A DNA stretch of 64,000 nucleotides from Macrostomum lignano (Eukaryota), in NCBI GenBank assembly GCA_002269645.1, contig NIVC01001722.1:1-64000 (forward strand). Direction: 5' to 3'. Position numbers and translations under genes: made by a program. Positions 1 to 25,407 of this stretch are shown here, piece by piece (the stretch's first letter is position 1; each line of letters begins with the position of its first letter). The notes beneath the pieces were generated by a model. The model saw only the letters and a program-made list of their open reading frames with translations. It ran no database searches and was not told the origin of the DNA.

Positions 1-706
1 CCTGCCCATGTGCAAGGTGTCTCGATACGCTCTGAACTTCTGCCACGTGCTGTCCTGTATGTGGATGCTGTGCTGGTCACTGACCGAGTGCTGGTTGTTC
101 ACCGACCGCTGGCCATGAAGAATGTCGGGCTGCGCTGGGCGGCGAGGGCTCTGGCTGGAACACTCGTTCTGTCCGCTGTGATCGCCCTGCCGAACGGCAT
201 TCTGGTGGGTCACCAGACAGTCACCATGCATGACGGCACCATCCTCATCTTCTGCTACCACCTGCACGAGACGCAGCTGTTCATGCTCGGCTACACGACA
301 TCGATGTCGAATCCACCTCTGGTGTTCATCCTGCTGATGCTGGGCCTCAACTGCTTCCTGCTATCGCGGGTGGTCGCCGCAGTCAGGAAGCGCCGCAGTC
401 TTTTATGCACTGCTTTGGCACCAGGATGGTGTCCGATGCCTTTTTCATTTTGCACTGCCAGCCCTGGCCATGAGACCAACAATGCAGCTTTCTCTCTACT
501 CTCTGGACTACCTGACTGTTCTGGCTATCGTGGCCTTCTCCCTCACCCACACCTTGGCCCTCATCAACCAATGCGTCAACTTTTTCATACTACGCAACCG
601 CAGCGCGCCGTTCAGATGCTGCCTGAAGCTGATCACTGCTCCAGCTGCACCAAGCGAACGGCTGAGCAGAGAGTGTGAGACGGTGAAATATTCAATTATC
701 AGATAG
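1..706 (+). pseudogene. Chimeric or disrupted class A GPCR copy (TM3-TM5 nearly identical to the 2791-3933 gene, followed by a divergent TM6-TM7 segment in another frame)
   Basis: 7-397 matches 3161-3552 almost base for base but lacks one G (gtggatgctgtgctg vs gtggatgctggtgctg), giving a frameshift near 70. After AAVRKRR the sequence diverges. The frame of ORF 470-706 gives LDYLTVLAIVAF..LINQCVNFFILRNRS, homologous to TM7 of the paralogs. The 5' part may lie outside the window. Confidence 0.75.
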
Positions 707-922
707 GGCAGGTACAAATTTCCGTTAGCAGCTTACGGGTCAAAGACTGCTCATAAAATTTTTTTGTTGAAACAGTTCACAGGGGCGTCGCCATGAATTT
801 TAAGGCGGGGGGGACAAAGCCAAAAATTCTACATGTACATGTTCATAACTAATTCCTACATGTACATTCTTTTCAAAATCGGGCTCGTCAGTGCTAATTT
901 TGTCGCCGCTAGCATTTATTAT

Positions 923-1578
923 AGCGCCGCAGGCATTCATTTTGGCGCCGCAGGCACTCATTTTAGCGCCGCAGGCACTCATTTTAGCGCCGCAGGCACT
1001 CATTTTAGCGCCGCAGGCATTCATTTTGGCGCCGCAGGCACTCATTTTAGCGCCGCAGGCACTCATTTTAGCGCCGCAGGCATTCAATTTGGCGCCGCAG
1101 GCATTCAATTTGGCGCCGCAGGCATTCATTTTGGCGCCGCAGGCATTCATTTTAGCGCCGCAGGCATTCATTTTGGCGCCGCAGGCATTCATTTTAGCGC
1201 CGCAGGCATTCAATTTGGCGCCGCAGGCATTCATTTTGGCGCCGCAGGCATTCATTTTAGCGCCGCAGGCATTCATTTTGGCGCCGCAGGCATTCATTTT
1301 GGCGCCGCAGGCATTCATTTTGGCGCCGCAGGCATTCATTTTAGCGCCGCAGGCATTCATTTTGGCGCCGCAGGCATTCATTTTGGCGCCGCAGGCATTC
1401 ATTTTAGCGCCGCAGGCATTCAATTTGGCGCCGCAGGCACTCCTTTTAGCGCCGCAGGCACTCATTTTAGCGCCGCAGGCATTCATTTTAGCGCCGCAGG
1501 CATTCATTTTAGCGCCGCAGGCACTCATTTTAGCGCCGCAGGCACTCATTTTAGCGCCGCAGGCACTCATTTTGGCGG
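923..1578. repeat. 21-bp minisatellite, ~31 copies
   Basis: Unit (a/g)gcgccgcaggca(t/c)tcatttt repeated head to tail. Confidence 0.97.
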
Positions 1579-1987
1579 CGAAAAATTCGAATGACTATTA
1601 ATAATTAAGCAGGACCGAATGGCAATGGCGACGGTGAATGAAAGATTTTGGGCTGATATCCTGAGCTCGGCTGAGCTGCCAGTCACGAACTTGGAAGCCA
1701 TAAAAACACATGTCAGATGAGTTCGGTGGAAATTGAATTGCTAAAATTAACTGATCCCTCTAAGGATTAAAAACCTTGGCGGTGATTACGGAATTGAAAT
1801 TGCATTGCTGAGTCTGTCGTGACAGTCTCTTCAATTATTTACGGGCTTCATCTTTACGGAAATTTCAAGCCGGAAAACGAATCTATGAAAAGATGATTGG
1901 CAACAGTTGAATAAATTTAGTCAATTTTAACAAAACATTTTATCATTGAATTTTTAGAAATAAGCATTGCTTCTAACGATAAAACTT

Positions 1988-2790: not shown

Positions 2791-3933
2791 ATGAACAACC
2801 TGACCTTGAAAGCGGTGAAAATCGGGTACGTGGAGAGTGCCATGCAGATTGTCAGGGACTGCCAGAGCGGAGACCCGTCCAGGTACCTCTTCTGCGTCAT
2901 GTCTCACGTTATCGGCTCCGTGTCGGCCGTCCTGCTGCCAATCGTCGTTGTACTCGGCACGCTGGGAAACATGGTCGTGGCCCACGTCATGCTGAACCGC
3001 CTGAAGCCCCTCACCCGCCAGAATCTGTACCTGGGCTGCATCGCGATCGCCGATATTCTCAGCCTCGTCGTGATCGGAGTCTTCAACGGGTTTCTCACTA
3101 AGGGGCTACCCTGGCTCACCAGAGGACAATTCGGATTTTTCAGCTACAACCTGAGCGACGCCATGTGCAAGGTGTCTCGATACGCTCTGAACTTCTGCCA
3201 CGTGCTGTCCTGTATGTGGATGCTGGTGCTGGTCACTGACCGAGTGTTGGTTGTTCATCGACCGCTAGCGATGAAGAATGTCGGGCTGCGCTGGGCGGCG
3301 AGGGCTCTGGCTGGAACACTCGTTCTGTCCGCTGTGATCGCCCTGCCGAACGGCATTCTGGTGGGTCACCAGACAGTCACCATGCATGACGGCACCATCC
3401 TCATCTTCTGCTACCACCTGCACGAGACGCAGCTGTTCATGCTCGGCTACACGACATCGATGTCGAATCCGCCTCTGGTGTTCATCCTGCTGATGCTGGG
3501 CCTCAACTGCTTCCTGCTATCGCGGGTGGTTGCCGCAGTCCGGAAGCGTCGCATTCTGCAGAATCGCTCCGGCATCAACGCGCAGGACAGCAGCAGGAAG
3601 GAATTATCAGGCACGGTGATCGTGCTTATCTTGGCCATTCTCTATCTCCTACTGCACACTCCTCTGCTGGTGAGTCGGCCCGCCATTGAAGTGTCGCTTT
3701 TCCTCCTGGACATGGCGGACAATTTGGACTTCCTCACTCTGCTGGCCAACCTCTTCTACTCCAGCTTGGTGATCAGTCTGATCAACCAGAGTCTCAACTT
3801 TTTTGTGCTTATGCGTCGCAGCCAACAGTTCAAGCAGTGCGTGTCGGCGGCTCTCTGCTGCGCCAGGAACAAAAGACCGAGGCGGTCAACATCTGGAATT
3901 GAGATGGGCACCGTCACTGCTAGTGCGCTGTGA
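2791..3933 (+). CDS. Intronless class A (rhodopsin-like) orphan GPCR, peptide/chemoreceptor-like
   Basis: ATG at 2791 (MNNLT, N-glycosylation sequon). Seven hydrophobic segments, GN in TM1, AD in TM2, Cys at the top of TM3 (AMCK), DR at the end of TM3 (TDRV), W in TM4, Cys in ECL2, P in TM6, NFF in place of NPxxY. Confidence 0.9.
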   Translation: MNNLTLKAVKIGYVESAMQIVRDCQSGDPSRYLFCVMSHVIGSVSAVLLPIVVVLGTLGNMVVAHVMLNRLKPLTRQNLYLGCIAIADILSLVVIGVFNGFLTKGLPWLTRGQFGFFSYNLSDAMCKVSRYALNFCHVLSCMWMLVLVTDRVLVVHRPLAMKNVGLRWAARALAGTLVLSAVIALPNGILVGHQTVTMHDGTILIFCYHLHETQLFMLGYTTSMSNPPLVFILLMLGLNCFLLSRVVAAVRKRRILQNRSGINAQDSSRKELSGTVIVLILAILYLLLHTPLLVSRPAIEVSLFLLDMADNLDFLTLLANLFYSSLVISLINQSLNFFVLMRRSQQFKQCVSAALCCARNKRPRRSTSGIEMGTVTASAL

Positions 3934-4045
3934 GCACGTGACGCGTAGGTAGGGTAGCGGAGGAAGCATTGACCGATCCAGGGCCGCCTTAACTGTCGGG
4001 GAAGAAAGTCTGATGGCGGGTCATTACTGGCCTGATTTCTAGTGT

Positions 4046-5116: not shown

Positions 5117-5323
5117 TGAGATATGAGATAAATCTCAGTTCTGTCTCTCTAGGGAATTTTAATTCAAACGAATTTGTCTATGGCTAAACCCCATTCAGTG
5201 CTGTGCAAAAGAAGAAAATGTTTGCGAAATCCGTTTAGAAAACACAAATTCTGTATTTTAAGCTTTGTCGTTCTTCAATAATACTTTTTCAACTTTTCAA
5301 CTACAGACTAAAACTGTAACGTG

Positions 5324-5925
5324 TAAACTTGAGACTGTAACCTGTAGATTTTAGCCTGTAAACTTGAGACTGTAACCTGTAGATTTTAGCCTGTAAACTT
5401 GAGACTGTAACCTGTAGATTTTAGCCTGTAAACTTGAGACTGTAACCTGTAGATTTTAGCCTGTAAACTTGAGACTGTAACCTGTAGATTTTAGCCTGTA
5501 AACTTGAGACTGTAACCTGTAGATTTTAGCCTGTAAACTTGAGACTGTAACCTGTAGATTTTAGCCTGTAAGCTTGAGACTGTAACCTGTAGATTTTAGC
5601 CTGTAAACTTGAGACTGTAACCTGTAGATTTTAGCCTGTAAACTTGAGACTGTAACCTGTAGATTTTAGCCTGTAAACTTGAGACTGTAATCTGTAGATT
5701 TTAGCCTGTAAGTTTGAGACTGTAACCTGTAGATTTTAGCCTGTAAGTTTGAGACTGTAACATGTAGATTTTAGCCTGTAAGTTTGAGACTGTAACCTGT
5801 AGATTTTAGCCTGTAAACTTGAGACTGTAATCTGTAGATTTTAGCCTGTAAGCTTGAGACTGTAATTTGTAGATTTTAGCCTGTAAACTTGAGACTGTAA
5901 TCTGTATATTTTAGCCTATAAACTT
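5324..5925. repeat. 35-bp minisatellite, ~17 copies
   Basis: Unit gagactgtaacctgtagattttagcctgtaaactt. Confidence 0.97.
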
Positions 5926-7501
5926 TAGAGTGTAGCTTGTAAACTTTAGAGTGTTTACTTAATACAGCCTCAGACTGTATCTTGTATCAGACCAACTGAA
6001 GCATGTAAATGGTCGAGCTTGTGTACTGTGAGCTACATTTCACACATTGAAGAATTTCTAATTCGGACAATATCCCACTTACAAACTAGTCAGCGCTTTT
6101 AGTCTGCACATTTTCTAAGCACATGATTACCGGCTGAGACTTATTGACTTTGCCAGCAAAGAGTTGCCAGTTTACTTAGGGAACTTGCCATGAAAGGGAG
6201 ATGGCCTCTAATGTTACAAAAAGTGATTCTGTTTGCTAAAAATACACAGCCTCTGCCACTTGCTGAACACATTGCTAGGTGATTTACAAATTGCCTTTCC
6301 TGCAACTTTCTAATGCAATAATGGCTGCATCAAATATAATTTTACAATTGGTTCGGCTCTGCTCTGCTCTTAGCAAACATTTAATGAATGTAGGAGTGCG
6401 TGCACACTGCAGCCAAACAGGTCCTGAATCGTTGTTCATCATCTGAGCGACGGAGATGATGATGGTGATTACCTAGCAGATGGAGGATGAGAGAAGCACG
6501 AACTTCTTCATGTCGACTAAAGGTCAGTGGCTGCTGAGACCGATTCCAGCGTTTTGTGCTTTTATATCCTAAATTTTAGCTCTTGAGCAATGGAGCATTC
6601 CATCTGGTTTATTAGGAAAGTGGTTTGAGTATTTTGATGTAATCTACTTTTCACTCTGAAGAAATGTGCCCATGGTCCATCAACTGCATGAGACGTGGCA
6701 TGCACTGATATTGCAATATTTCAAACAGTATATATTCCTCTCAAAGAGATGTTCTCAACTACTTTAACGTAGAATAAAATTGTGCTCAAATTAAACCGAA
6801 ACTGCGAGTGCGCCCGCTCCACTGCCTGTGTGTTTATTGCGGGTGCATTTAAAAAACCATGCCTTACATGGGCTACGAAATGTATGCAGATTAATAGTCT
6901 AAACTGGCAGAGTGATTTGATTGTCGTTAATTTAAAAAAACTACAGGTTTTTTTAAGATCGACAGATTAGCGGATACCAGCGAGCAGATGGAGCTACCAA
7001 ATCACAGACTAAACAGGTGCGGTTCAGGTTGGGATAATTTTTTAAAATATTGTTAGTTAGCTTTGAAAAATCTCAAATTTTTAGAAAAAATCCTTATTAA
7101 GATTATTTGAATTCGTGCATCCATAAAGGTAATCAAGCGACTCAAGTGTGACAATAGAAAGCAGTAGTACGATCTCACAGTGCGATAAAATAGTTGAAAA
7201 TATACGCGAATGGTGACATAACAACACAAAACTACGGCCTAATAGAGTGTAGCCTGACTGTCAATAGTCAAAACTAAAAGTACATAAAACGGAGGCGATA
7301 AAGTCTATCGGCGTGCAAAGAGTGCAAACGTAAAATATCATTAATATGTTCGTGCAAACTCATGTCCAATAAAAATTCACTCATTTTTAGTCTTTCAAAT
7401 ATCTCATCAATGTCGTACACTCGTCCTTTCACAGAACACAACATCCTCAGTAGCGGGAAGTCCGCCAGTCTTCTCCGCCCTCCTGTCGCAACCTCAGATC
7501 C

Positions 7502-8647
7502 TCAGTTTGCCGTTCCACTGGCCGTCGGCTGGTCTGTGTCGGACCTGGACTGCAAGTCTTTGCCAGCAGAGCAGCAGAACATGGCGAGAACGCATCTCTT
7601 GAAGGACTGGCTGCGGCGCATCAGCACGAAGAAGGTGAGGCTCTGGCTGACTACGCTGAACACGAGGGTCATGAAGAACAGGTCGGCCAGCAGTATAATG
7701 TAGTCCAGGTGAGTGGCCGTGTCCAGCACGAACTGGGAAATCTCCAGCAGCATCCGGCAGGCCAGCAGCGGGGCGTGCAGCGCCAGGTAGATTACGGCCA
7801 GGATCACCACAATGATGGTGCCGGAGATCTCCTTCGGATATTTCTGCTTCTGCGACTCTCCGCCGCCGGCGCCGAAAGACGACATGCTGCGGCGTTTGCG
7901 CACCGCGGCAGCCACGCGGGTGAGCAGGAAGCAGTCCAGAGCCAGGATCAACAGGATGATCAGCAGCGGCGGGTTGGACATCGCCGAGGTGTACACCATC
8001 ATGAACAGCTGGTAATCTGGCAGGTGCGAGCACAGGATCACAGTCACCCCGTCTGGCCGGTACAGCAGGTGGTGCCCGGTAAGAAAACCGTTCGGCAGGG
8101 CGATCGCAGCGGACAGAACGAGTGTTCCAGCCAGAGCCCTCGCCGCCCAGCGCAGCCCGACCTTCTTCATGGCCAGCGGTCGGTGAACAACCAGCACTCG
8201 GTCAGTGACCAGCACCAGCATCCACATACAGGACAGCACGTGGCAGAAGTTCAGAACGTATCGAGACACCTTGCACATGGCGTCGCTCAGGTTGTAGCTG
8301 AAAAATCCGAATTGGCCTCTAGTGAGCCAGGGCAGGCCCTTGACAAGGAACCCGTTGAAGACTCCGATCACGACGAGGCTGAGAATATCGGCGATCGCGT
8401 TGCAGCCCAGGTACAGATTCTGGCGAGTGAGCGGTCGCTGGCGCTTCAGCATGACGTGGGCGATGACGATGTTGCCCAGAACTCCAATGAAAAATATGAT
8501 GGGGAGCAGTACGCCCGATACCGAGCCCGTGATGTTAGACTGGATGCACTGCATGTACCTCGATGGGTCACCACTTAGGCAGTCTTGGACCATCCGGAAT
8601 GCATTGGCTGAGTAGACAATTCGCGCCTCTTTGCCCGTGCCGTTCAT
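7502..8647 (-). CDS. Intronless class A orphan GPCR, paralog 3
   Basis: ATG at 8647 (MNGT sequon), 7TM pattern, same motifs as 2791-3933; acceptor-like tttggtcccag just upstream of the ATG. Confidence 0.9.
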   Translation of the reverse strand: MNGTGKEARIVYSANAFRMVQDCLSGDPSRYMQCIQSNITGSVSGVLLPIIFFIGVLGNIVIAHVMLKRQRPLTRQNLYLGCNAIADILSLVVIGVFNGFLVKGLPWLTRGQFGFFSYNLSDAMCKVSRYVLNFCHVLSCMWMLVLVTDRVLVVHRPLAMKKVGLRWAARALAGTLVLSAAIALPNGFLTGHHLLYRPDGVTVILCSHLPDYQLFMMVYTSAMSNPPLLIILLILALDCFLLTRVAAAVRKRRSMSSFGAGGGESQKQKYPKEISGTIIVVILAVIYLALHAPLLACRMLLEISQFVLDTATHLDYIILLADLFFMTLVFSVVSQSLTFFVLMRRSQSFKRCVLAMFCCSAGKDLQSRSDTDQPTASGTAN

Positions 8648-8740
8648 GATGGCTGCTTCTGGGACCAAACAGGTGGGGACAAGTGACGTTTTCTGATGAT
8701 TTTCATATGGTCTTTCTTGAAGCTTCTAGTCTCTCAAATT

Positions 8741-9027
8741 GTAGCTTCCACTGCCTCATCTTGTAGCTTCCACTGCCTCATCTTGTAGAATAGCTTCCAC
8801 TGCCTCATCTTGTAGCTTCCATTGCCTCATCTTGTAGCTTCCACTGCCTCATCTTATAGCTTCCACTGCCTCATCTTGTAACTTCCACTGCCTCATCTTG
8901 TAGCTTCCACTGCCTCATCTTATAGCTTCCACTGCCTCATCTTGTAGCTTCCACTGCCTCATCTTATAGCTTCCACTGCCTCATCTTGTAGCTTCCACTG
9001 CCTCATCTTGTAGCTTCCACTGCCTCC
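8741..9027. repeat. 22-bp minisatellite, ~13 copies
   Basis: Unit tagcttccactgcctcatcttg; lies between a candidate donor (~9139) and the acceptor (~8663) upstream of GPCR 3. Confidence 0.95.
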
Positions 9028-9699: not shown

Positions 9700-12120
9700 C
9701 CCCGCGCGGTGTGATTGGCTGTTATGGGGTAGAGCCCGTCGGAAGGGGTTGTGGTGGGGTGGTGGGCTGGAGCTGCCTTGCAGCCCTATCTCTCTCTCCC
9801 CTCCGCGTGTGCCGGCTGTTTAGGCAGTCGCGCCGCACTCTGGGTCTGTGTTTACAGACTTTCTAGCTCATGCTTAGTCTAATTCTGGTTGCCAACTTGC
9901 CCTCGGCCTTGACGACTTTTTCGTCAAGCGCGACCGCTGTTTTTCGTTATTTGTACGAAAAACAGCCGGCATTGGTTGCTTAAATTGCTACAACCTCAGC
10001 TACAACGCCATTGCTGGTTGCCAGAGAGCCTCCTGCTCTTACCGCCACATCTGCAAAGTGAAGGGCTGTGGGCGGCAGCATCCTGCTCATCAGCACCAGC
10101 ATCCTGCTCAACTGCTCCAGCGCGGTCCTGATGACTCGCGGCCAATGCAGGAGACAAAAAACTGAGTGAATTTTATAGTGCTTTTAATCCTCCGCGTCAA
10201 CCAAATTTTAACTCCTCTGCTGGTGACTTGAAGGCTTCCGCTTGGGAAAAGCTGTTGCATAACGACCCCGACAAGCAGTATTTGATGAATGGTATTGTTC
10301 ACGGCTTTCGTCTGGTTAATAATAAGCAGCCTAATATTACTACTCTGAGAGATAATTACGCATCCGCTAGCCAGAATGCCGCCAAGGTGGAAGCTCAGCT
10401 TCTGGATGAGCTTCGGCTAGGCCGCTACACCATTACTCAGGAGCCTGTGAAAGTGAACCCCATTGGTGCCTTGCCTAAAGCCAACGGGAAAGTCCGCCCC
10501 ATTCACGATCTGTCTGCTCCGCTCGGCGACTCTGTTAATGACTACTATCAGCAGGAGAAAGGCATCCGTTTTGGCTCCGTTCGAGAATTCAAAAAGCATT
10601 TAAAGCCCGGTTCCTTCATGGCCAAAGTGGATTTGAAAGATGCCTACAGGTCCGTCGCCATCAGTCCTGATGACCAAATTGTCTTACTGGTTTGAAGTGG
10701 CGCTTTCTAAGCCAGGACTGCGAGACTAAGATGTTCGACACCAGGCTGCCTTTCGGTTCGCGCGCCTCCTGTGAGATTTTTCACCGGCTCTCATCAGCGG
10801 TGAGGCGCTACATGGTGCGGTGCGGTTTTCATGCCACCGTCAACTACCTGGACGATTGGGCGATCGCAGCTGACACGAAGAGCGGGGCCCGGCGGGCCTA
10901 CGATTTTCTGACTAATCTGCTGCAGTCGCTGGGGTTCACTATTAACTGGGATAAGTCGACTCAACCTGTGCAACAGTTGGTTTTTCTGGGAATAAGCATC
11001 GATACGCGCAAGGGCACGATGAGTCTTCCTGCTGACAAAGCCAGTGAGATCGACAGCCTGCTGAGGGACTGCGGCCGCATGCAGACCATTCGCCTCAAGA
11101 CTATGCAGAAGCTGGTGGGAAAGCTCGGCTGGCTGTGTCAAATCAATGGCGGCCTTTCCTTGGGCCGCTGATTGCCTCCATGGACTATGACTGCAAGGCT
11201 CCAATTTTGGTTACGTCCGAGCTGAAAATGCATCTGGATTGGTGGCGGGAAGCGCTGGACTGGTTGCCGCCTAGTAGTCTATGGCCAAACTACCAGCAGC
11301 TCGCAGCGATCGAGTCTGGCAGCTGCACCAAAGGTGCGGCAGGCATTCTGAGGACCTCAACTGTCACTGACTGGGTCTACATCAACTGGGAGAGAGACTT
11401 TAATGGCCAGTTCATGAATTTACACATCAACTTCAAGGAAGCCATGGCTCTGCTGTTGACTGTTTTAAAGTTTCGCTCGACTCTGGTCAACACCAAGGTT
11501 GTGGTGTATTCTGATAGTACCGCCGCTGTCGGCATGATAAAGCGCCTGTCCTGCAGTCATCCCGATCTCCTTCGGATCTATCAAACTGTGTCTTTGTTGT
11601 GCATTCGTGATGGTATTTGTATTGACGCTTATCACCTGCCGGGTCGTATGCAAATTTCTAGTGACGCTGCGTCTCGTATGCTCGGTTCTCGTGCTGAATT
11701 GCTTAACTTTTGCTTTCGTTTTTATGGTCACATCTGCCTTTTGACTGACAATTTTTCCATGCACGCAATCTCGGTGTGCTCTCGCGCCGCCCTCCGCTTT
11801 CAGGTCGCCTCCGCTCTCGGGACGGGCCGCCCCAGAAGGCAGTCTCCGCCGGTCTGCTCTGCCGCCTCGCCCTTGCAGATAGTTCCTGGAAATCCTACTG
11901 CAGCCAATTCAAGGCCTGGCGTGTGTTCTGTGATCAGGCGGGCATCGGTCCGACCACCGCCAGCGAGAGCGACCTGTGCCAGTACGTCGTCCACCTGGTG
12001 CAATCACGAATTAGCGCCTTCTCAGCCCTGCGGTCCTACATCAATGCCGTCTCGGTGCTCCACCAGCTGGCCGGCTCGCCAGACCCAGCTGCAGCGCATT
12101 TTGCAGCGAAAACTATGTAA
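9700..12120 (+). mobile_element. Degenerate, 3'-truncated tyrosine-recombinase retrotransposon (DIRS/Ngaro type)
   Basis: Order is gag Cys/His tail (CYNLSYNAIAGCQRASCSYRHICKVKGCGRQH, ~9962-10167), RT (KVRPIHDLS, KVDLKDAYRSV, LPFGSRASC, NYLDD), RNase H (HINFKE, YSDSTAAV, HLPG), then an overlapping ORF 11776-12120 resembling the YR N-terminal domain (SWKSYCSQFKAWRVFC). Frameshifts near 10690 and 11140; the recombinase catalytic domain is missing. Confidence 0.85.
10228..11171 (+). pseudogene. DIRS-type reverse transcriptase, frameshifted near 10690
   Basis: ORFs 10228-10695 and 10692-11171 join into one RT containing the YLDD motif. Confidence 0.85.
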
Positions 12121-12339
12121 CAGTCTCCAGTGAAATTTGCAGGATTTGAAAGCGCAAGCGTCCTTATAATGTAGTTCTCCAAGCCTCATATTCGTGTGCT
12201 TGTGTCTGTACAGTGGGTATCGCTGACTGCAAACTGACTGTCGTCCTGATTTGCCCTAAGTGCCCAAAAGCATCTCAGCAAACCATGCTACTACAAGTAG
12301 TGCAGTGTAACCTAATTTCATCACTCTCTGAACTTACCT

Positions 12340-13002: not shown

Positions 13003-13028
13003 TTCCTCACGGGGGCGTAGATTGCTAG
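13003..13028 (+). mobile_element. Helitron-like 3' terminus (degenerate hairpin plus CTAG|T) of a probable non-autonomous element
   Basis: cctcacgggggcgtagattgctag|t closely matches the 3' end of the large Helitron (ccccaacggggggcgaagattgctag|t); 5' end not located. Confidence 0.55.
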
Positions 13029-13811
13029 TTCCATCTAAAATTTCGATAATGCATCAAAACAGCAAAGGAAATGAAGCATCTCTCAGCGGTAAAAGGTGTG
13101 AAAATGGTTAAATTCCTGGATTCGGCTAAAGACGCCAAATCAACGTTTTTCTTTTTCTATCGATTCCGCACGTCAATAGAAGAATGAAGCTTTTGTTTCG
13201 AAATCAAACAGGCTTTTCTGAACAATTGACGTGTTGGTGATGCGCCATGCGTTTTACAATAGGGCAACAGCTCAATTTGAATGGGGCAACTCAATAGGTT
13301 TTCCTTCTCGAAAAGGCTGCACGAATGATCAGGCGCACTGGATATTTAAGAAATAAAATTTTCAGAATCTTTAAAACCCTTCAGTGCTTTTGTTTACATA
13401 TGGGAAAAGTGAACAGTTTGCATGCTTTCCATGCATGTTCTTTTCCGGTCGCGATTGCGTAACACAAGCGTAATATTATTATTTTTAATTTCGGCAGCCG
13501 TAAGATTATCATAAGACGGCCGGCTTCAGGATATTTCAGAATCTGAACTACCGGTGATTTGCATCAAAATGGAACAGTAGCTCTTTGGTCTTATGACTTG
13601 ATCTGATGGGAATTATAGACAATCTGTGACAAAAAGTATGAAGTAAAATCTAGGTTGCATCATAGATAGGAACTAGCAATCTTCGCCCCCCGTTGGGGGG
13701 CATCTGTATAGAATCTCTGTTCTCTACAAGTAACAAAAAGACAGCCAAATAAAGCCTTGACAAAGACAACAGACAAACTGCTCAAATAAAGTGTAATGCA
13801 AAAAGAAATCA

Positions 13812-14005
13812 TCCCAGACAGCAAGCATCCCCCAGATAGCAAGCATCCCCCAGATTGCAAGCATCCCCCAGATAGCAAGCATCCCCCAGATAGCAAGCAT
13901 CCCCCAGATAGCAAGCATCCCCCAGATAGCAAGCATCCCCCAAATAGCAAGCATCCCCCAGATAGCAAGCATCCCCCAGATAGCAAGCATCCCCAAATAG
14001 TAAGC
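13812..14005. repeat. 18-bp minisatellite, ~11 copies, inside the Helitron 3' region
   Basis: Unit agcaagcatcccccagat. Confidence 0.95.
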
Positions 14006-14114
14006 ATCCACCAGACAATAAGTAGCTAGTGCCACAATTTCCTTAGCTCTATAGTGGCTCCTTTAAAATTGGCATGACGCTTACTTTTACGTTTGAAATT
14101 GTGTATCTTTTATG

Positions 14115-14275
14115 TTTGACATGGTGGCTTTTTAGTGTTTGACATGATGGCTCTTTAATGTTCGACATGGTGGCTCTTTAATTTTTGACATGGTGGCTCT
14201 TTAATGTTCGACATGGTGGTCCTTTTATGCTTGACATTGTGGCTCTTCAATGTTAGACATGGTGGCTCTTTTATT
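14115..14275. repeat. Degenerate 23-bp tandem repeat, ~7 copies
   Basis: Unit gacatggtggctctttaatgttc. Confidence 0.8.
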
Positions 14276-15412
14276 TTTAACGTTTGTTAAACGTTTTTGA
14301 CGTTTGTAACGCAAGAATTTTTTGTATTTTTTTGCGAATAAACTTGAAAAGTACAAAGTGAAACTTATGAACATGGCATTAAAAGTACAACCGATATGTC
14401 ACGTATACATAGCGTGTGCAATGGCTGCATGTGACCAGATGAGTTCCTTTAATACTCTACGTTAGTCTATAGTCGCAGCCCTCGGATTCGCTCATTCCTG
14501 CCCTCAAATCCATAGTCAGAACAATCAGTTCGGCTCTATATTTCCTTAGCCTTTGCGCTTTGCCACAGACTATTCATATTTGTTTCGCCAAAGATTAAGA
14601 AATGAAGTAAGACAAAAGCTCCATTCAGGGCCTTCGCCTTAGTTAAAATTGACATCTTGTGAGTTTCGTATATTATTCAACTTTCAATATATGGAAGACG
14701 AAGGCCCCGTCGCAAGTTGATGCAAATCGTTTTTTATGAGCTTACAGTCCACAGTTGTTACAGGTGACTTGAGATATTTTTGATTTTTGAAAAAAAGACT
14801 GTCACTCATAGTTTGCGTAAAAATCCATATACTAAAATTCACTCTAATGTTAAGTTTTTGCGAACCTTGGAAAACTAAAAACAAAATTGTTTCGTCTTTT
14901 GCATAAATTTGCGATATAAAATAAGTAAAGTTTTTACACGAATTATAATGAAATTTCAGGGGAAAAATAAAAGACAAAATTAACTGCTCATCAAAGATTG
15001 AATTCATTAAAAGCAGTGCAAAAGAAGGTTTGTTTCAAAAGTTACTTTCGGCTAATATGAAATTGCCTTAAAATACAAATTAACTGTAAAGTGCAAATTG
15101 ACTGTAAAAATTAGTACAATGAATTAAATAAGCCTAATTGAGCTTCAACATAAAGTTCATCAGCTATTAGCTCGTACTCACTGCCATGCAATATCTACGC
15201 TTCGTTAGAAATGAGGTTGGGGCAATAAATTTCCTGCGATTCTTTTAGGAATGAGAGCTATTGACAGCTATTGCTTTAGAGAATGAGAGCTATTACTTAA
15301 GAGATATGGGGAAATAATTATTCTATTTTTCCTTAAAAATAAATGAATATACTTTCTAGCCTTTTGCATGAGGAAAATTATTGCTCACCCCTCATTTTTT
15401 ACGATAAATAAA

Positions 15413-18400
15413 TTAGTCTTCAGTGAGAACTTCTGGAAACACAACGTTTCTGGTCCTTGTTCCCGGAATCCGGACGCGAACATTTGCCGCGTTCTTTGCT
15501 CGTGACAGCGCCGTGTACAGCTGGCCATGCGTGAAGCAACCGACTGACAGGTCACGCCAACTGTGTCCAGAGACTGTCCCTGCGACTTGTGAATCGTCAG
15601 GCAGAAACTCGGCTTCACAGGGAACTGCAGCCGCTTAAAACTGACGGGGAGGTCCGCATTGCTAGGAATCAGCGGGATTCGCGGCAGAAGAATCTCGTCT
15701 CCCGTGAACTGGCCGGCGGCAATCTTGCATCTAAGCACGTTCTCGCCCATTGCGAGTATGATCAGCCGCGTACCATTGCACAATCGTGGCGGGTTGATGT
15801 TCCTGAGAAGAACTACTGGCATACCCACTTTTAGCCTCAGCAAGTGAATCGGAAAGTTCGGGGCATCCAGCTGGTTGAGCAACTCAGGCGGGAAGTGCGT
15901 AGCGGCATCCTCATCGGCCACACTGTCTATTGAGCGGTACTCCCGCAGGCTGCCGGGGAACATGCCCAGGCACGTCTCGTTGATGGCATCCACTGAGTCA
16001 TTGTACGGCGCCAGGATCGCTCGGCTTGCAAAGTAGCCGTCCCTCTCCACTGAGGCCTCAAACGATGGGTACACAAAATTTATAAGATCATTGAGCGGCG
16101 CCTCCGCAGAAATGATGATCTCAGCAGGAAGAGACACTTTCTCCTCTGCATCCTGCTCAATTGTTCCGGATCCGATCTGGGGGAGTTAAAAGTCAAATAT
16201 TTAAAACGCTAGACAGACTTTAAGCAAGGCATTCTTGAATAAGCCACAATTTTTAAAATGGAGCTCTCAACACGAAAGAAACCGAACATCCTTAAATCTT
16301 CCAATAAATAAACTGATGAAAACAAACTTACCTGCTTGAGTAGCTCGGTGTATCTCAAATACGTTGCAGAATCGGAACTGCTCAGCAATCGGATGTTTCT
16401 TGTAAGGCGATGCCGCCGGAAAAATTTCCACAGTGGGGATCTGCTGACACACGCCATGACGCTGTTGGCTCGAGTCCCATGCACCACAACGGGCAGCAAC
16501 TGGCGAAAGTCCCCAGCGCAAACGAAAACCACTCCGCCGAATGGCACGTCCTGCTTCCGCACGTCTCGCAAGCACCGGTCGACGGCCTCCAAATCCTTCC
16601 GGTTTGTCATAGAAATCTCGTCCCAGACAATTAGACGCACTGTCCGAAATACAGCGGCCTGTTTGGACTGCGCTCCAACAGCGCACACGTCTTTGCTCGA
16701 ACGGATCGCCCGAATTGGTATCTTGAACCTGGCATAGACAAATAGTTTCACCATGCCGAACATATTTACAGCACACGAAATATTTACAACTGCTTTTTGA
16801 AATATTGACAATAAATTACTCACGTTGAATGCGCCGTCTGTCCACCTGGCAAAAGAGTCGCTGCGATTCCAGAAGCCGCAACGGCGAGGGCGACTTCACC
16901 CCGGCTGCGCACGAAGGCTAGCAGAACCTCCAGCAGGAAGGTCTTGCCAGTGCCAGCGGGCGCGTCCAGGAAGTGCAAGCCGCTGGTGCCGTCCACAAGA
17001 TTCTGAGTCACGGACTCGTACACCGCTTTCTGCTCATCTGTCAGCATTGGTAAGCGCGCCTCAGTAATCAGTGCTTGCTCAACCGTATCAAACTGCATTG
17101 GTCCATCTTGAGGTGTCACGGAGGCCGCAGGCAGGCCGTACTCTGGCAGGCTTCTCCCGCCCATGGAGATCAGCATGCTCTGAAGCTCACGCAGCGCCAG
17201 GTCAGTAATCTCCTCGGTGCTCAAGTCTCGGTGGTGAAACCGCAGGTCCTCGCTGAGATCCTCGGCAAAACTGCACCAGAGGTCGCTGCCATCCTCAGGC
17301 TCACCCCATATGAGAATTACGGCCAGAAGATGTCTCAGGGCTCTTGGCATTCTTGACTGAACGGCCTCAGCTAGACACCGCCGCCAGTGATCATCTCGCT
17401 GCAGCAGGCCAAGGGCCATGCAAGCAGCCTTGGCGCTCGGATGCACAACGCCGTCCACGGTCTGCAGCGCCTCGAAGCTAGTCGGTCCCCTAACATTCAA
17501 AAGGAGCATTCGAACATAAAATAAATCACCTGCTCTTGGACTCACCGTGTACATGCGTGCAACGTTTTTGTTCCGCACTACACCCGGATGGCCATCGACT
17601 CGCACACCCTGCTTGGCCCGCCGCCACTCTCTTTCGCTGGAGTGCCACACAAAGTAGGACGGCACCTCCGTGTAGAGCAAGGACCCAGCAAATTCGTCAA
17701 TACGGCACAGCTTGAAAAACGCCGTCAACGTCGAATCCTTCGGCGTTCTCGCTTTTGCTCTTGCGGTCCCCTCGTTGAAATACACGAGCTGCTCTTCCGA
17801 CTTGTGAACGCAGAGTCGGATGACCGCCGGAAACCTGTTGTGCACCTGATCAGAAAGTGAAAGGAAAATATACAGCCTTTAAGTTTCGATCGAAATTCAA
17901 TTTATACTATGACGAGGTTTCACAGCTCTGGTTAAAATGAGCCAATAATAATTAGAATGCGAATTACTTCAAAGCCCAAGATGGTATTCACGGCTTCCAT
18001 TGGACCAATGTAGCGCGCGGACAGGTACTCCTTAATCTCATCACGCCGCGGCTCATTTCGTGTCGTTTGCGTCGGCTGCTGGTTACCCACTGCCTGCTCT
18101 CTCGGTTCAGTAGAATTCCTATTGGCATCGACTTTGAACGTCGCCATGTCGCCACCCTTTAACAGGTACTTGATCACGTACTTGACCGACTTCACAGTGG
18201 CGCAAACTTCGACGTTCAAGTGGCACGCAAACTGGAGCAACAGGTCAGGGCTGTACGGAACGACCCACCTGTTTTAATGAAAAAATAATATCATTAACTT
18301 TCAGAAACAAAAGCTGCAATGCACAACTAAGCAATATATTAGCGTTTGAACTTCCCTGTTGTCCATGCGAATGCTCCGGCCTTTGAACAGTTTGTCCACT

Positions 18401-21400
18401 GTAAATCCGCCCATCTCAGGCGATAGTCTGCGGTACAGTGGGTAGCCAGTATCGCTGGTCAGCGTCACCTGCTGGAACTCTTTCGGAAAGCCCTTGCTGC
18501 ATTCGCCATTCTCCATGCAAGGACACGCCGGATTCTCCTTGCCGCAGGGGCCATGGATCATGTGCGTCTTCACCAGCTCATACAGCACAGGCTGCTGCTC
18601 TGGGTCCGGAATCTCGGCAGACACGATGTCATCGTATCGGTCCGGAGTCACTCGCTGACCGCTCACGAGCCACAGCAGAAAGTGCACATGGGGAAGACCT
18701 GGAGCGTCAAAAAAGTATTAAAAAATATCACAAAACCTTGTAAATCTAAATTTTAATAAATCTTAAAACTTTGATTCTTGCAAGTCAGAATTTTTACTCA
18801 CCACGCTTCTGGTACTCCAGTGAGCAAACGTGAGCGGCCTCTTTCCCATAGCGCTTGGTCAACTGGGCCAGCAGAGCTTTCTTCTTCATTTCAAAGACTC
18901 GGCTAACAATGTCGGGCCGGTCTTCTGCCCGCTGTCCAGGCAGAAGCTGAGCGCTGATCTCCGGCCATTTCGGATTGCACGTTGCGGTGACAAACAGGTC
19001 CGGCTTACCGAACTTGTGAACATAGGTCATAGCGTCCTGTAGCCTCTCCATCAGGTACCTTGGCCCGCCAACGAAGCTCGAAGACAGAAGCACATGCGCG
19101 GGCTTGCCTATGTCACTCGGATCTCTGTCGGTAGACCTGCCATCAGCTGCAAACAGAGCGTCCCGCAGACCGCTGTACGTCTCGCTGCGCAGGTCCTGCT
19201 GATGGGTCCGCAAATACAGCAGCCTCTCTGCCTCAATCTTGGCACACATGTCCACCAAGTACTGCTGAAATAATCTTCGGCCATAGTGCAGCACACTGAA
19301 CTGGCCCGCTCGCACCATGATTTCGCTCGCATAGTATTTCATGGGCGTCAATTTCTTGCCATTACTCATCAGCAACTCCGGGTGCCAGCCATCTTCGCCA
19401 TTCGGGAACAGCAGCACATACTCCAGCGGGTCATATGAGCGGTGCGTCTCGCTGATTCTCTGGGAACCGCCACCACGCAGTTGAATCACGACGTCCCGAC
19501 TGGCCGGTGTGTTCTCATTGTCCTCCACAATCAGGATACCGACCTCGTTCGCCGTAGGCAAGTTGTAGCGCCTTATTTTGAACGGAGTTTGTGGGATACT
19601 GAGTTTGTACAAATTGGATAATTGGATAATTTATTACGCAAAATATCTTATTAGAATGTCTTGCAGACATACCGAATGTGTTCCCCAGATGGTCGACGGT
19701 CAGGGTGAATCACGATTCGCGCATCTCCCAACTCCGGATCTTGACTGATTCGATGAGCGACTGCCCTCAGGCTGCGGACATAGCCGTTGCACTCGTGAAG
19801 CAGCGTCTGCAATAGCTCCAGTAGCTCCGGCTTCACCTTCTGGCTGAGACTCTGGCGGCTTTCAAGTTCGCGATCATTGAAATACACCTGCCAGCCATGG
19901 GGCTCAGCTGAATCCTCTGCAAACAGCGGCGCCGTGTTGTGATGCAACTGGCCGCTGATGATGAAGCTGGGACACCAGCCTGGCACCAACCGCAGTTTGG
20001 CACCCAGCGATGTCAGGTGCAGCGCCGAGTTGTAACTCCGAATGTTGGTCAGGAACTCGGCACTCAGTCTGTGCCGCCCCAGGTACAGATCCGCCAGCAC
20101 TTGAGGCACGGTGCGGCTGGGCAGCTTTACCTTGCCTTTGGCGCAGCAGAAATTCCTCGTCTCAGAGCACCAAAGTAATGCACCGCATTGGTCGCATGCT
20201 CTGTCCATTGGGCCACAGTTATGGGCTGGCGCTTCAGGCCTGATAATCCGTTCTGGCCTGTGATTGGAAGGATTAGGATTAGGAAGGATTAATGGCAAAC
20301 AGTTTTCCCAGTTAATCTTTCAGTTTACAAAAAAATTTATTGGAATAAAACAACTTGATTTCGATGACAAATAAATTATGATGACCAGTCACACCAATGA
20401 CCTACCTCTCTTGAGCAGGTCTTGCGCCAAAATGACCTGCATTCTGCTGAGTTAATCTTGGCTCCTCTGCATCTACAATGGGCTCAGAAACTGGAATCGG
20501 ATTAGCAAATCGCAATGACTCATAATGCTCATGACGCAAAAGAATTCGGACGATTGCAATCGGTGGCTGCAAAGGGGACATACAGTACTGCAGTACAGTC
20601 CCGTTTTCTTGATAAATCGCCAGATCAACATTAAAACAACGGCTTAAAAGCGGAACAACTTCATCAGGCACATATGTGCCTTCAGAAAAAGAGGAATCAA
20701 CAATGAAATCAGCATTTTCTGGCAAAACAAAGCCTTGTTCAATCAATTCTGGCATAATCTGCACTACACGGCTCGTCAGCTCGTGTCTTAAAGATGCCGC
20801 ATCGGTCTCAAGTGGAGTGCCCTGCAACTGATCACAGACTGCATAAAAAAAACAGTTCCCATCACCAGGAATGCGAATTATGCGCAACGCATCAAAAGGT
20901 ACCACAGACGGTGTGGCCAACTCACTACTATCAAACCTGGAATATAGGAAAAAAATTATACACAACTTCATTTGCCGGTAATTAAAGTAGTGACGAATAA
21001 ATTTTATGCTATTCTATACTGATCTCTTAAATAAAACTCTTGGAAAGCAATCGACTTGAAAAGATGAGAAAAAATGCACGAAACAGATTCCAGTTTTTAA
21101 TTATATGCCCAAGTACCAATAAAACATCAGCTAAGATAGAAAATACCCCGAATTAGGCACAATGGGCACTTGGATTTTATATGGCTATAAAATATATAGC
21201 TCCAATTAAAATGTCATCCTACCTGCCAGCCGACACTCCTCGACGGCGAATTTGCTCGGCTTCCACTCGAGCTCTTCGTTGCTCTTCGGTTTCTGAAGCG
21301 CGTCGCTTCTCCGCACGAGTTCTGTCTCCAGATCTACGCTCTTCTCGCTGAGCGTCGGTTTCAGTTGCCCTTCGCTCAGCCTCCTGCTGCCGGTGTCCAG

Positions 21401-21839
21401 CCAGCCGCTCTTCTCGCTGCGCGTCAGTCTCCATGGCCGTTCGCTCAGCCTTCTGCTGCCGCAGTCCAGCCAACCGCTCTTCTCGCTGCGCGTCAGTCTC
21501 CATGGCCGTTCGCTCAGCCTTCTGCTGCCGCAGTTCAGCCAGCCGCTCCTCTCGCTGCGCGTCTGTCTCCATGGCCGTTCGCTCAGCCTTCTGCTGCCGC
21601 AGTTCAGCCAGCCGCTCCTCTCGCTGCGCGTCAGTCTCCATGGCCGTTCGCTCAGCCTTCTGCTGCCGCAGTCCAGCCAACCGCTCTTCTCGCTGCGCGT
21701 CAGTCTCCATGGCCGTTCGCTCAGCCTTCTGCTGCCGCAGTTCAGCCAGCCGCTCCTCTCGCTGAACGGCACTCTCTTGCTGACGCTTCTTCTTGGCATC
21801 TCTGCTCTTCTTCAATGCGCTGGTGCCACGTCGAGCCAT
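15413..21839 (-). CDS. Spliced Helitron RepHel protein: STPR-like repeats, OTU protease, Zn finger, HUH-Y2 Rep, Pif1-type helicase (9 exons, two lesions)
   Basis: Exons by eye: 21839-21223, 20936-20406, 20257-19673, 19571-18802, 18698-18356, 18268-17968, 17845-16824, 16728-16332, 16176-15413; phases are compatible. Motifs: GDGNC...HY (OTU), CDQC..CC, FVTATCNP, EYQKRG|LPHVH, YPLYRR, KYVIKY, DAPAGTGKT, WDEISM, GDFRQLLPV, TIHKSQGQS. Lesions: the donor at 18355 reads GG rather than GT, and there is a 1-nt deletion near 15553. Confidence 0.9.
21380..21770 (-). repeat. 69-bp coding tandem repeat (23 aa ETDAQREERLAELRQQKAERTAM), ~5.5 copies
   Basis: In-frame repeat in Helitron exon 1; the E-T-x3-R-x2-R-L pattern and 23-aa period match STPR repeats. 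Confidence 0.85.
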
Positions 21840-23611
21840 ATTGGAATTCGAATTGAAAAATAATAATTTTTGAGTGATAATGAAAAGAAAGGATAGTAGG
21901 GGTTGTGTGCGAGAAAAGAGAAAGGTATGAAGTCTATAATGTCACGCGTTTTAAACTCAGCAACCACCCAATCCCAAAAAGCTGGACACCATTTGTACAC
22001 TGTTAGACTGTCAGTGTGTACAGCAAGCCTAAATTCTCTCCAATACCCGCCTGCTAATTGGTCAGGACTTTTTTATTATTCAATACTCTCTCTCAAACAC
22101 CTAACTCTAACTCTCCTATGTGAAAGGATTCAGATAAATTTTCTGAAGGAGGCGCAAGCCTCAGTAGCCAATGTACGAGCGTACATCTATCTCTGTGGCA
22201 CTTTTGGACCTTTTTATAATCAGACGGTTTTATTACATTTTGGGGGTTAGTCGCAAACATGGTTCGTATATTGTGAATCAATTAGATACTGTATATATGT
22301 GCATGTATTTCAATCTCTCACTCTCCCTCTCTCCAGCATTTAAAGTTAGTATGTTAATTGTGCACGGGGACATTTTATAATGTACAATCTTTTTTCGCAG
22401 TCTACATTTATAGTTCTCTAGCCTGGCGACAAAAAATACTACTTTACTGGGCGCTGCAAAGTTCAATTCCAATCAGAATGGCTCACAGTAGAAAGTTCTG
22501 CTTGACCCTTGCAGAAAGGCATGTGTGTTATTCGAATATTCGCGCTTCTTCTAGGCTTTACAAGAACTACTTTTCATGCTTAAAATGACACTTCTTTTAC
22601 GATTTTTATGACACTTGTGGTTCTGAATTAGTAAGCCTCGACGCTAGCATTTTTTTAGGTTTGTCATGACGCCTCTTTTATGTTTAACAAAAATTACACT
22701 ATAAGATGAGCACGAAGCAGTTATGACATAATCAATTTTTCAATCGGTCAGTATATCAGTTCTAATCAAAGTTAACAATATGGTTACGCAGTCTAAATCA
22801 AGTCTCGTAATATGCTTCTACACAGTGTTTTCAACACTGTGACGCAATTCAAGTCGGAGGTACAATTCAGCTGTTATGCAATCTTTATCACAATCGGAAT
22901 TCAGCCAGTCAGTTTTTTCTCTAGCATTTCAGGTCGAAAGAGCTGCTTGACCTTTGCAAAAAAGCATGTTTTTCGAATATTTAATCCCTTTAACATTGAG
23001 CAATTTCTTAGCCAAGATGCATGTACCGTCCCAGGAAAATTTCTGATCGAATGGTGCAAGTTTGAAGAAAATCGGTTGAGCCAATTTTTCTGAAATCTAT
23101 CGCATACCTACCTACCTACCTACCCACAGACAACTCATTTTTAGGATATAGGACTTCAAAGGATAAAACCAGTGATAAGACCAGTTCTAAGCCTTCCTAA
23201 GTCTTAAAGACAAAAAATTGTCTACACGAGCTTGCAGAAGAAGCTTTACTAACTCGTATGTTTCAAAGCAGACTTAATCTTCTTACTAAGTGCTGTTTCC
23301 AGATGCGTAGCTAAATACAAAATATTTTAATATGGGCTGCATAAGGCAGTAATACACCAATATGGAAGGCTTGCGGAGGCTGAAACCAGCTGAAACGTCG
23401 AGGCACATGGAGCCACTCCCTGCTCTCCGGCTGCTGAAGTCTGTGCGCTCAACTGGTAACCCATTATATTCTTTCATCCATGCAAAAAACAGCTTTCTGT
23501 CACTTCTGCTTTGTCTACAACTCATAAACATGCAGCAGCCAAAGGAACCCGAAAATTGCTGAGCATCAGGGCGGCTGCCTCAGCCTTCATCCGGGTGCCT
23601 CATCAGGGTAC

Positions 23612-24000
23612 CTCCTCCTTCATCCGGGTGCCTCAGCCTTCATCCGGGTGCCTCAGCCTTCATCCGGGTGCCTCAGCCTTCATCCGGGTGCCTCTACCTT
23701 CATCCGGGTGCCTCCTCCTTCATCCGGGTGCCTCTGCCTTCATCCGGGTGCCTCTACCTTCATCCGGGTGCCTCAGCCTTCATCCGGGTGCCTCTGCCTT
23801 CATCCGGGTGCCTCAGCCTTCATCCGGGTGCCTCTGCCTTCATCCGGGTGCCTCTACCTTCATCCGGGTGCCTCTGCCTTCATCCGGGTGCCTCTGCCTT
23901 CATCCGGGTGCCTCCTCCTTCATCCGGGTGCCTCCTCCTTCATCCGGGTGCCTCAGCCTTCATTCGGGTGCCTCCTCCTCGCATCCGGGTGCCTCAGCCT
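23612..24000. repeat. 20-bp minisatellite, ~19 copies
   Basis: Unit cct(c)(a/t/c)(g/a/t)ccttcatccgggtg, e.g. cctcagccttcatccgggtg. Confidence 0.95.
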
Positions 24001-24327
24001 TCATGCCGCAGCAGATGACTAGGATAGGGCCATTTGGGTGCTGAAATAATTGAAATGGAGAAAATTCCAAGAACATATAAAAGAATTTTCTAGGCTTTAA
24101 GCATTTGCTTTTGTATTTTTTTAACCTGCCACTGAGAAAGCGTACTGATAATGCAGGTTTTTCGAGCTTCGAGTTATTTCAATCTTTTCGATTTCTGCGG
24201 ATTGTTGAATGAAATGACAACAAAAGCAGGTATCAGTAGCCATTAGGTAAAGTTGCCCTTGACAGTCAGAAACCGATCATGAAGTCCATTTTATTCTAAG
24301 TCAAGCCTGCAGCTTCAGTCTTGTAAC

Positions 24328-25407
24328 TTAAGGTTGATAGTCAGCACTGCGACGCAACAGCACGGCTCTTCGAAACTGACGATTTCGGCGTAGCAGCACG
24401 AAGAAGGCGGTGCACTGGTTGATGAGGCCAGTCACCGAGCTGCAAAACAGCATGTTCACCACCAGGGCTATGTAGTCCATGTTTTCAGCCACGTTCACTA
24501 GGCGGGCCGCCAGCTCAGCCCAGAGGCGGAACACAAGCATCGGAACGTTGAGAACCAGGTAGATAACGCTCATAATCATGACCACTAGAACTCCAGAGAT
24601 CTCCGAGGTAGTCAGCTGTTGCTGCTGCTGTTGAGCCGCCGACAAAGACCGACGATTTCGGATTGATTGGATAACCCGCCGGAGCAGGAAACAGTTGAGA
24701 GCCAGGATAGTCAGGATGAGCAGCAGTGGCGGGTTGGTGAGCAAGATGGTGTACGGCATCATGAACAGCTGCGAGTTGGCGAGTCGGTAGCAGTAGATGG
24801 CTGCCACCCCATTGCCCAGCGGCACTTGCAAGTAGCCCATCAGGAAAACGTTCGGCAGGGCGATCACAGCGGACAGAACGAGTGTTCCAGCCAGAGCCCT
24901 CGCCGCCCAGCGCAGCCCGACATTCTTCATGGCCAGTGGTCGGTGAACAACCAACACTCGGTCAGTGACCAGCACCAGCATCCACATGCAGGACAGCACG
25001 TGGCAGAAGTTCAGAGCGTATCGAGACACCTTGCACATGGCATCGCTCAGGTTGTAGCTGAAAAATCCGAATTGGCCTCTGGTAAGCCAGGGTAGCCCCT
25101 TAGTGAGAAACCCGTTGAAGACTCCGATCACGACGAGGCTGAGAATGTCAGCGATAGCGTTGAAGCTCAGGTACAGATTCTGGCGAGTGAGGGGCCTCAG
25201 ACGGTTCAACATGACGTGGACCACGATGATGTTGCCCACGAGTCCAGTGACGAAGATCGCTGGCAGTAGGATGCCAGACAGGATGCCCATCACGTTTGAC
25301 ACGGCGCAGTACAGTTTCCGGGACGGATCGCCGCTCATACAATCCCTTACCATCAACATGGCGTTGTCACCGAATACAACTCGCCTCACTTTTTGAGTGG
25401 CATTCAT
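24328..25407 (-). CDS. Intronless class A orphan GPCR, paralog 4
   Basis: ATG at 25407 (MNAT sequon), 7TM pattern, shared TM2-TM4 core, acceptor-like atatcttag|cgATG. Confidence 0.9.
   Translation of the reverse strand: MNATQKVRRVVFGDNAMLMVRDCMSGDPSRKLYCAVSNVMGILSGILLPAIFVTGLVGNIIVVHVMLNRLRPLTRQNLYLSFNAIADILSLVVIGVFNGFLTKGLPWLTRGQFGFFSYNLSDAMCKVSRYALNFCHVLSCMWMLVLVTDRVLVVHRPLAMKNVGLRWAARALAGTLVLSAVIALPNVFLMGYLQVPLGNGVAAIYCYRLANSQLFMMPYTILLTNPPLLLILTILALNCFLLRRVIQSIRNRRSLSAAQQQQQQLTTSEISGVLVVMIMSVIYLVLNVPMLVFRLWAELAARLVNVAENMDYIALVVNMLFCSSVTGLINQCTAFFVLLRRNRQFRRAVLLRRSADYQP

Follow-up and report, generated by a model that had tools for sequence, protein, structure and literature searches.

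Regional gene conversion with an intragenic boundary is already well documented among receptor genes. In the fugu protocadherin subclusters the 3′ regions of the paralogs are >99% identical, the 5′ regions are 60-80% identical, and the GC content at third codon positions (GC3) is raised (PMC1852091). In the TLR1/TLR6 pair the same region has been converted independently in nine mammals, and the authors of that study interpret conversion as holding back divergence in a functional region as the other domains diversify (PMC2077338). Among G-protein-coupled receptors (GPCRs), conversion tracts between CCR2 and CCR5 in bats always include extracellular domains (PMC8877049), selection around the ligand groove has been proposed to reduce effective conversion among chicken FFAR2 paralogs (PMC4453067), and mosaicism has been reported across the human rhodopsin-class receptors (PMC2684142). 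Here we describe a case that differs from these in detail, not in kind, in the flatworm Macrostomum lignano. The stretch of DNA analysed (the window) comprises 64,000 nucleotides (assembly GCA_002269645.1, contig NIVC01001722.1, positions 1 to 64,000 of the forward strand), and its first 25.4 kb holds four copies (A-D) of one gene type, an intronless class-A GPCR apparently in or next to the flatworm orphan family PROF1. Inside these genes, a 342-bp block spanning transmembrane helices 2 to 4 (TM2-TM4) traces back to a much more recent common ancestor than the remaining sequence, and its homogenisation is best, and probably correctly, explained by interlocus gene conversion.

The locus resembles the protocadherins of fugu, zebrafish and mammals in that tandem single-exon receptor paralogs combine a homogenised and a divergent block across a discrete intragenic boundary; the same synonymous-site argument applies, and the divergent part is again the presumed determinant of specificity. 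Compared with the fugu genes, in which the block lies at the 3′ end behind one boundary, the block in the window is internal with two boundaries, is ~95% rather than >99% identical, shows no rise in GC3 and occurs in a small cluster with inverted copies. With TLR1/TLR6 the locus shares the confinement of conversion to one region of tandem receptor paralogs and its recurrence across lineages, here in the window and in the tapeworm Anoplocephala perfoliata. The two systems differ in fold, that of the TLRs being LRR/TIR, and in the nature of the evidence, since concerted evolution was shown directly there by orthologs of nine species and is read here from paralogs alone. CCR2/CCR5 and FFAR2, like the window genes, are intronless class-A GPCR tandem paralogs exchanging partial coding tracts. 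Unlike the tracts in bat CCR2/CCR5, however, the tract in the window spares the N-terminus and extracellular loop 2 (ECL2) and covers TM2-TM4 with ECL1. Our literature search found no paper tying gene conversion to flatworm PROF1 receptors.

Results

A young internal block in old receptor genes

Three of the four copies are intact. Gene B (2791-3933, + strand) encodes a class-A GPCR of 380 amino acids from its first ATG, gene C (7502-8647, − strand, first ATG at 8647) one of ~381 residues, and gene D (24328-25407, − strand) one of 359 amino acids; each consists of one uninterrupted open reading frame (ORF) from ATG to stop and is therefore intronless. Copy A (window 1 to ~700, + strand) is a partial PROF1-like GPCR, which the window edge truncates and which, as assembled, resembles a pseudogene. 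The orientation of B is opposite to that of C and D, no similarity between the copies is detectable outside the coding sequences, and no further copies were found in 27-64 kb by tblastn and blastn. An earlier reading of this DNA, made from the sequence alone and referred to below as the original prediction, had located the copies correctly to within a few bases and had quoted their ECL2 strings correctly.

Codon alignment of B, C and D delimits a shared segment of 342 bp. In B this core occupies 3010-3351 (+ strand), and codon alignment, breakpoint scan and identity place it at 8090-8431 in C and at 24850-25191 in D (both − strand); copy A, which the window edge cuts, contains part of it at window 6-195 (+ strand). 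While nucleotide identity between the genes is 93.9-95.6% in the core, it is 58-62% in the flanks, and the longest exact runs span 55-82 nt in the former and 14-17 nt in the latter. The contrast includes synonymous positions. Synonymous divergence (dS, Nei-Gojobori method) falls from 0.96-1.64 in the flanks to 0.15-0.18 in the core, a 7-10 fold contrast, nonsynonymous divergence (dN) is 0.012-0.028 in the core as opposed to 0.35-0.55 in the flanks, and 12-13% of four-fold degenerate sites differ in the core compared with 51-70% outside it. The original prediction had described a core that is nearly identical even at synonymous sites, set in diverged flanks. The flanks are as described, core and flank dS are far from equal, and the high identity and low dS of the core are confirmed, but near-identity overstates the case: the cores are ~95% identical, and core dS is ~0.15 and not ~0.

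A two-breakpoint likelihood scan, compared with a null of 200 codon permutations, assigned the low-divergence block to alignment codons 83-196 in both B/C and C/D, and to codons 72-196 in B/D, where its 5′ end lies ~11 codons upstream of the one seen in B/C and C/D. Log likelihood ratios (logLR) were 72-102, compared with a permutation maximum of 17. On the AlphaFold model of B (predicted local distance difference test 78.5, predicted template modelling score 0.77), which has seven long helices and a β-hairpin in ECL2, the core corresponds to residues 74-187. With helices modelled at 76-109 (TM2), 123-156 (TM3) and 166-189 (TM4) and the ECL2 hairpin from residue 191, the block is predicted to comprise TM2, ECL1, TM3, intracellular loop 2 (ICL2) and TM4, in agreement with the TM2-TM4 extent first proposed.

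The three cores are similar without being uniform. Each pair differs by 15-21 substitutions, many of them copy-specific and clustered. Seven of the 12 core differences private to C fall within 16 nt (p ~1e-4) and form a micro-patch at 8333-8348 (− strand; equal to B 3093-3108), which is an island that escaped conversion or else a short tract contributed by a donor outside this set. Near the 5′ end of the core, five of the nine differences private to D fall within 21 nt (25147-25167, − strand; equal to B 3034-3054). The original prediction had cited alleles shared in a mosaic fashion for its patchwork reading; three of the four are private to B (B 3258, 3267 and 3270), which leaves that argument with a single phylogenetically incompatible site (B 3247, pattern AC|BD). 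The C-private cluster and the extended A/B tract described below are better evidence of patchwork than these alleles.

In the flanks dN/dS is 0.21-0.51 with dS saturated, and they look like ordinary old divergence under purifying selection, without signs of accelerated or conversion-driven diversification. Nothing pointed to positive selection on ECL2, where dN/dS is ~0.45, a weak indicator as dS is saturated. Conversion is seen limiting the divergence of one block, not creating diversity, and the earlier proposal that it yields a modular, diversifying receptor repertoire is not supported.

A second, longer tract in copy A

Copy A carries a B-like tract at 6-401 (+ strand; equal to B 3161-3557) that is 97.5% identical to B. 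The tract covers the 3′ part of the core (6-195) together with ECL2, TM5 and the start of ICL3. With a dS of 0.084 within the core and 0.080 beyond it, the tract extends ~200 nt 3′ of the core at uniform dS before ending abruptly at ~401. The sharp boundary after the motif IALPN that had been noted at the outset is therefore a property of B, C and D; between A and B high identity runs on across it. In the 190 nt of core that can be compared across all four copies, A has no private substitutions.

The TM6 region is absent from copy A, and its TM7-like stretch (458-628), which is read in a different frame, shares only ~40% protein identity with B. Near window 70 the loss of one base from a GG dinucleotide, which could be a sequencing error, shifts the frame. 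The assembled copy A resembles a pseudogene and is chimeric, with a B-like middle joined to the tail of a fourth lineage. Its bases 1-5 mismatch the shared core at four of the five positions, and another breakpoint may lie at the window edge.

PROF1 genes of other flatworms

Schistocephalus solidus (L002) has two tandem PROF1 genes 8 kb apart. The dN of this pair is lowest in TM2-TM4 (0.17-0.18), and dS there is >1 or saturated, as it is elsewhere in the two genes, which indicates that the family has no built-in synonymous constraint in this region.

A. perfoliata (L001, CM142496.1) has three tandem PROF1 ORFs, X (10001-11443), Y (14850-16295) and Z (22610-24157), all complete and intronless. 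Between Y and Z, codons 41-232 differ by 6.4%, compared with 28.9% outside (logLR 62, permutation maximum 10), and dS is 0.05 over TM2-TM3 as opposed to 0.84 in the rest. All three pairs have a dS of 0-0.09 over the N-terminus/TM1, and X is separated from both Y and Z by a dS of 0.5-0.6 in TM2-TM4. The cluster is an independent replicate with low-dS tracts that are specific to pairs. The deposited gene model P0005 (284 aa; 10001-15325) fuses the 5′ parts of two successive PROF1 genes of this cluster.

Compared with distant homologs, TM2-ECL1 of the window genes is 39-56% identical, better than the rest, and TM3-ICL2-TM4 is 19-35% identical, no better than ECL2-TM7 (13-29%). The core protein as a whole is ~33-49% identical to the closest Macrostomum homolog. 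Protein constraint does not explain the block, since it fails for half of it: TM3-ICL2-TM4 is poorly conserved in homologs and yet 95-100% identical among B, C and D.

Proposed assignment of the window genes to PROF1/Srfb

The intact genes score 49.8 (B), 46.1 (C) and 47.8 bits (D) against Pfam 7tm_1 (PF00001), compared with a gathering cut-off of 30.5. A HMMER scan of 1.84 billion representatives returned 315 relatives, of which the best show 30-36% full-length identity and a fragment of 140 residues shows 50%. With B alone, phmmer matched P0007 from Sparganum (3.8e-32) and P0009, an Echinococcus 'rhodopsin orphan GPCR' (8e-28); a word-indexed protein search with B alone and a protein search with a Macrostomum-weighted alignment gave no match. 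The best database matches are flatworm proteins, without a close non-flatworm relative. A Hymenolepis match carries the name PROF1, and P0001, P0003, P0004 and P0010, all within the ten best matches, are proteins of Macrostomum lignano itself. Of these, P0001 (UniRef100_A0A1I8HJ75, 2481 aa) is the best match. It is a fused gene model that combines a pair of almost identical PROF1-like copies, of which one is interrupted, with unrelated cadherin-like sequence; from the two copies it follows that Macrostomum has very recent duplicates of the PROF1-like family.

PROF1 receptors have been described as intronless, with degenerate rhodopsin motifs of the form [L/I]A..[D/E] in TM2, D[R][C/M/L/V] in TM3 and [N/S/D][F/G/I]..[Y/F/M/L] in TM7, DR[L/V] in TM3 being the PROF1-II pattern (PMC3261222), and the family has been equated with planarian Srfb (PMC6114109). 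The window genes are likewise intronless, and B, C and D all fit the TM2 pattern (I-A-x-x-D, as IAIAD) and the TM3 pattern (DRV). They also have the long KGLPW-containing ECL1 that is common to the cestode and Macrostomum sequences. In TM7, the NFFVL of B fits the PROF1 pattern, whereas TFFVL in C and AFFVL in D, in which the asparagine is replaced, do not; in TM6, Y...H.P or Y...N.P is an exact match to none of the three published PROF1 patterns. The genes further differ from the described family in their low identity, which is 27-50% to any database member. By motif and similarity, the window genes appear to fall within or beside the flatworm-specific orphan family PROF1/Srfb, as distant relatives. 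The TM7 position concerned is that of the N of NPxxY, a motif usually linked to receptor activation, and is occupied by N in B (~3790-3810), T in C (~7625-7645) and A in D (~24400-24420).

Repeats, mobile elements and neighbouring genes

The DNA between the GPCR copies consists of minisatellites and mobile elements. Minisatellites are present at unusual density: the 64 kb contain ~20 arrays, whose periods are 13-69 nt. They include arrays at 897-1577, 1988-2457, 5322-5949, 8717-9026, 12340-12771, 13813-14015, 21336-21765 and 23572-24004 and, more distally, at 40142-41347, 42344-44918, 45444-46406, 47197-47840, 48638-50036, 53189-53829 and 58493-59180; one array lies directly upstream of the start of gene C, and the interval from A to B holds others. 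At 50692-52050 there is a G-rich degenerate 21/37-nt array (units GGATGG / GAACAGGATGG); its GC skew is +0.585 over 2 kb, and both strands carry long spurious ORFs.

Between genes C and D lies a Helitron-type element (15385-19612, possibly to ~20971, − strand) with Helitron_like_N, PIF1 helicase and Pif1 2B domains, which is split over several ORFs and hence probably degraded; an OTU-like domain suspected in its ORF at 20402-20971 was unconfirmed by Pfam. An element bearing a reverse transcriptase (10228-12133, + strand, RVT_1 at 10692-11171) is a degraded retroelement of three consecutive ORFs in different frames. The pol region of a long terminal repeat retrotransposon (59653-63588, − strand) encodes aspartyl protease, reverse transcriptase, RNase H and integrase in two adjacent ORFs.

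Host genes lie next to the GPCR cluster at 29050-30267 (+), 32777-33493 (+) and 52526-54496 (−). The host ORFs comprise a peroxin-13-like ORF (Peroxin-13_N and SH3), an apparently intronless Ras/Rab-family GTPase of 238 aa, and two exon-like ORFs with glycosyl-hydrolase-15 similarity, which presumably resemble a phosphorylase-kinase regulatory subunit.

Discussion

The proposal that ectopic conversion has acted between direct and inverted copies is supported by the dS contrast, the two breakpoints and the A/B tract, as well as by the comparison with S. solidus and A. perfoliata. The variation of the tract ends by pair, further 5′ in B/D and further 3′ in A/B, and the clustering of the residual core differences also count in its favour. 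Simple unequal crossing-over is ruled out by geometry, since the block is internal, bounded by two breakpoints, and lies in genes of opposite orientation (B versus C and D), an arrangement that conversion can produce. Non-crossover recombinational repair would have copied the block between direct and inverted paralogs. TM2-ECL1 is the stretch of the family under the strongest protein constraint, and nucleotide identity there probably stays high enough to seed heteroduplex formation; tracts would then stop where identity collapses, at the TM4/ECL2 junction; conversions that reach ECL2-TM7 may in addition be selected against. The net effect would be to limit the divergence of one block, with the N-terminus and ECL2-TM7 staying old and paralog-specific.

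Several observations weigh against conversion. GC3 is not raised in the core (0.73-0.77, compared with 0.71-0.85 in the flanks), which is thus without the footprint of GC-biased conversion, a common though non-obligatory mark of converted tracts. A GENECONV-style test (Sawyer-type longest run) on polymorphic sites gave p = 0.02, 0.71 and 0.78; it was significant in only one of the three pairs, as expected where all three genes share the tract and few core sites are polymorphic, and gives no positive evidence; it was superseded by the two-breakpoint likelihood scan with codon permutation. The same 3′ boundary is found in B, C and D, for which there are three possible causes: repeated homology-limited events, counter-selection of conversions into ECL2-TM7, or some more complicated history. 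Three sequences (B, C and D) are too few for proper tree incongruence between segments, and neither sister-species orthologs nor other paralogs of this genome were retrieved from the collections searched, in which the best homolog is 34-50% identical. An exact look-up of D in the assembly index gave no match, nor did a degenerate DNA pattern for FGFFSYNLSDAMCKV or a protein-guided scan of metagenome contigs.

The same pattern could in principle arise from the opposite history, in which the genes are young duplicates (dS ~0.15 throughout at birth) whose N-terminal and ECL2-TM7 parts were overwritten from divergent family members elsewhere. The core would then be an unconverted remnant, and conversion the diversifying force. 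The data give the relative ages of the segments and not the direction of transfer, copy A joins a B-like TM3-TM5 to a fourth-lineage TM7 that is only ~40% identical to B, and the micro-patch in C could stem from an unseen donor. Such flank replacement nevertheless demands that two or more genes each received two or more independent tracts, their inner ends falling at the same codons, and it requires donor copies, which are absent from the 64-kb window. It is less parsimonious than conversion of the core, and conversion between sequences that are only ~60% identical is mechanistically disfavoured; we consider it improbable.

More improbable still is selection on synonymous sites through an element that overlaps the 342 bp, whether a structured mRNA, an antisense gene or a target of small RNAs or editing. 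The block boundaries are essentially equal in B, C and D, as such an element would have it, and antisense ORFs span the core in C and D. In B, however, the antisense frame is closed, for which reason an overlapping antisense gene was rejected, and an RNA element was rejected because no Rfam family matched in window 1-26 kb and the core folds like shuffled sequence (z-score -0.25, no better than shuffles; -0.77 for the next 343 nt). Moreover, dS is saturated in the same region of the tandem S. solidus genes, the low-dS tracts of A. perfoliata are pair-specific, with X remaining distant from Y and Z, the A/B tract continues 200 nt past the core at equal dS, and the core protein retains just ~33-49% identity to its closest Macrostomum homolog. 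It is also hard to credit that assembly or polishing homogenised the consensus, by cross-mapping of paralog reads, in the most similar segment of the genes. The genome is extremely repeat-rich, as the minisatellite arrays of the window attest, and the GG deletion in copy A could be a sequencing error, but the cores are not identical, their 15-21 substitutions per pair forming copy-specific clusters, and the frames are intact in all three genes. The independent assembly of another flatworm, A. perfoliata, contains the same kind of tract, and cross-mapping presupposes the very similarity that has to be explained.

Beyond conversion itself, TM2-ECL1-TM3-ICL2-TM4 might be a selectively maintained shared module of PROF1, a surface that paralogs co-evolve by conversion and that recurs independently across flatworm lineages, although we regard this as unlikely. 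The module could be where a co-receptor, dimer partner, chaperone or invariant part of a ligand docks, and would be arranged around the unusually long, conserved KGLPW-type ECL1. If this reading were true, the N-terminus and ECL2-TM7 would carry the individual specificity of each receptor, and PROF1 phylogenies based on TM1-TM4 would be distorted.

Taken together, these results reveal no new mechanism and add a clear example, with strong statistical backing, of concerted evolution restricted to one segment, in an orphan GPCR family found only in invertebrates; the conversion process also acts in a tapeworm PROF1 cluster, that of A. perfoliata. The published PROF1 trees rest on an alignment of TM I-IV (PMC3261222). 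Because that alignment block contains the converted region, homogenisation may account for part of the apparent species- or cluster-specific expansions of PROF1. These receptors have been considered as selective targets for anthelmintics, and the shared block and the paralog-specific ECL2-TM7 beside it are the likely seats of family-wide and paralog-specific properties, respectively.

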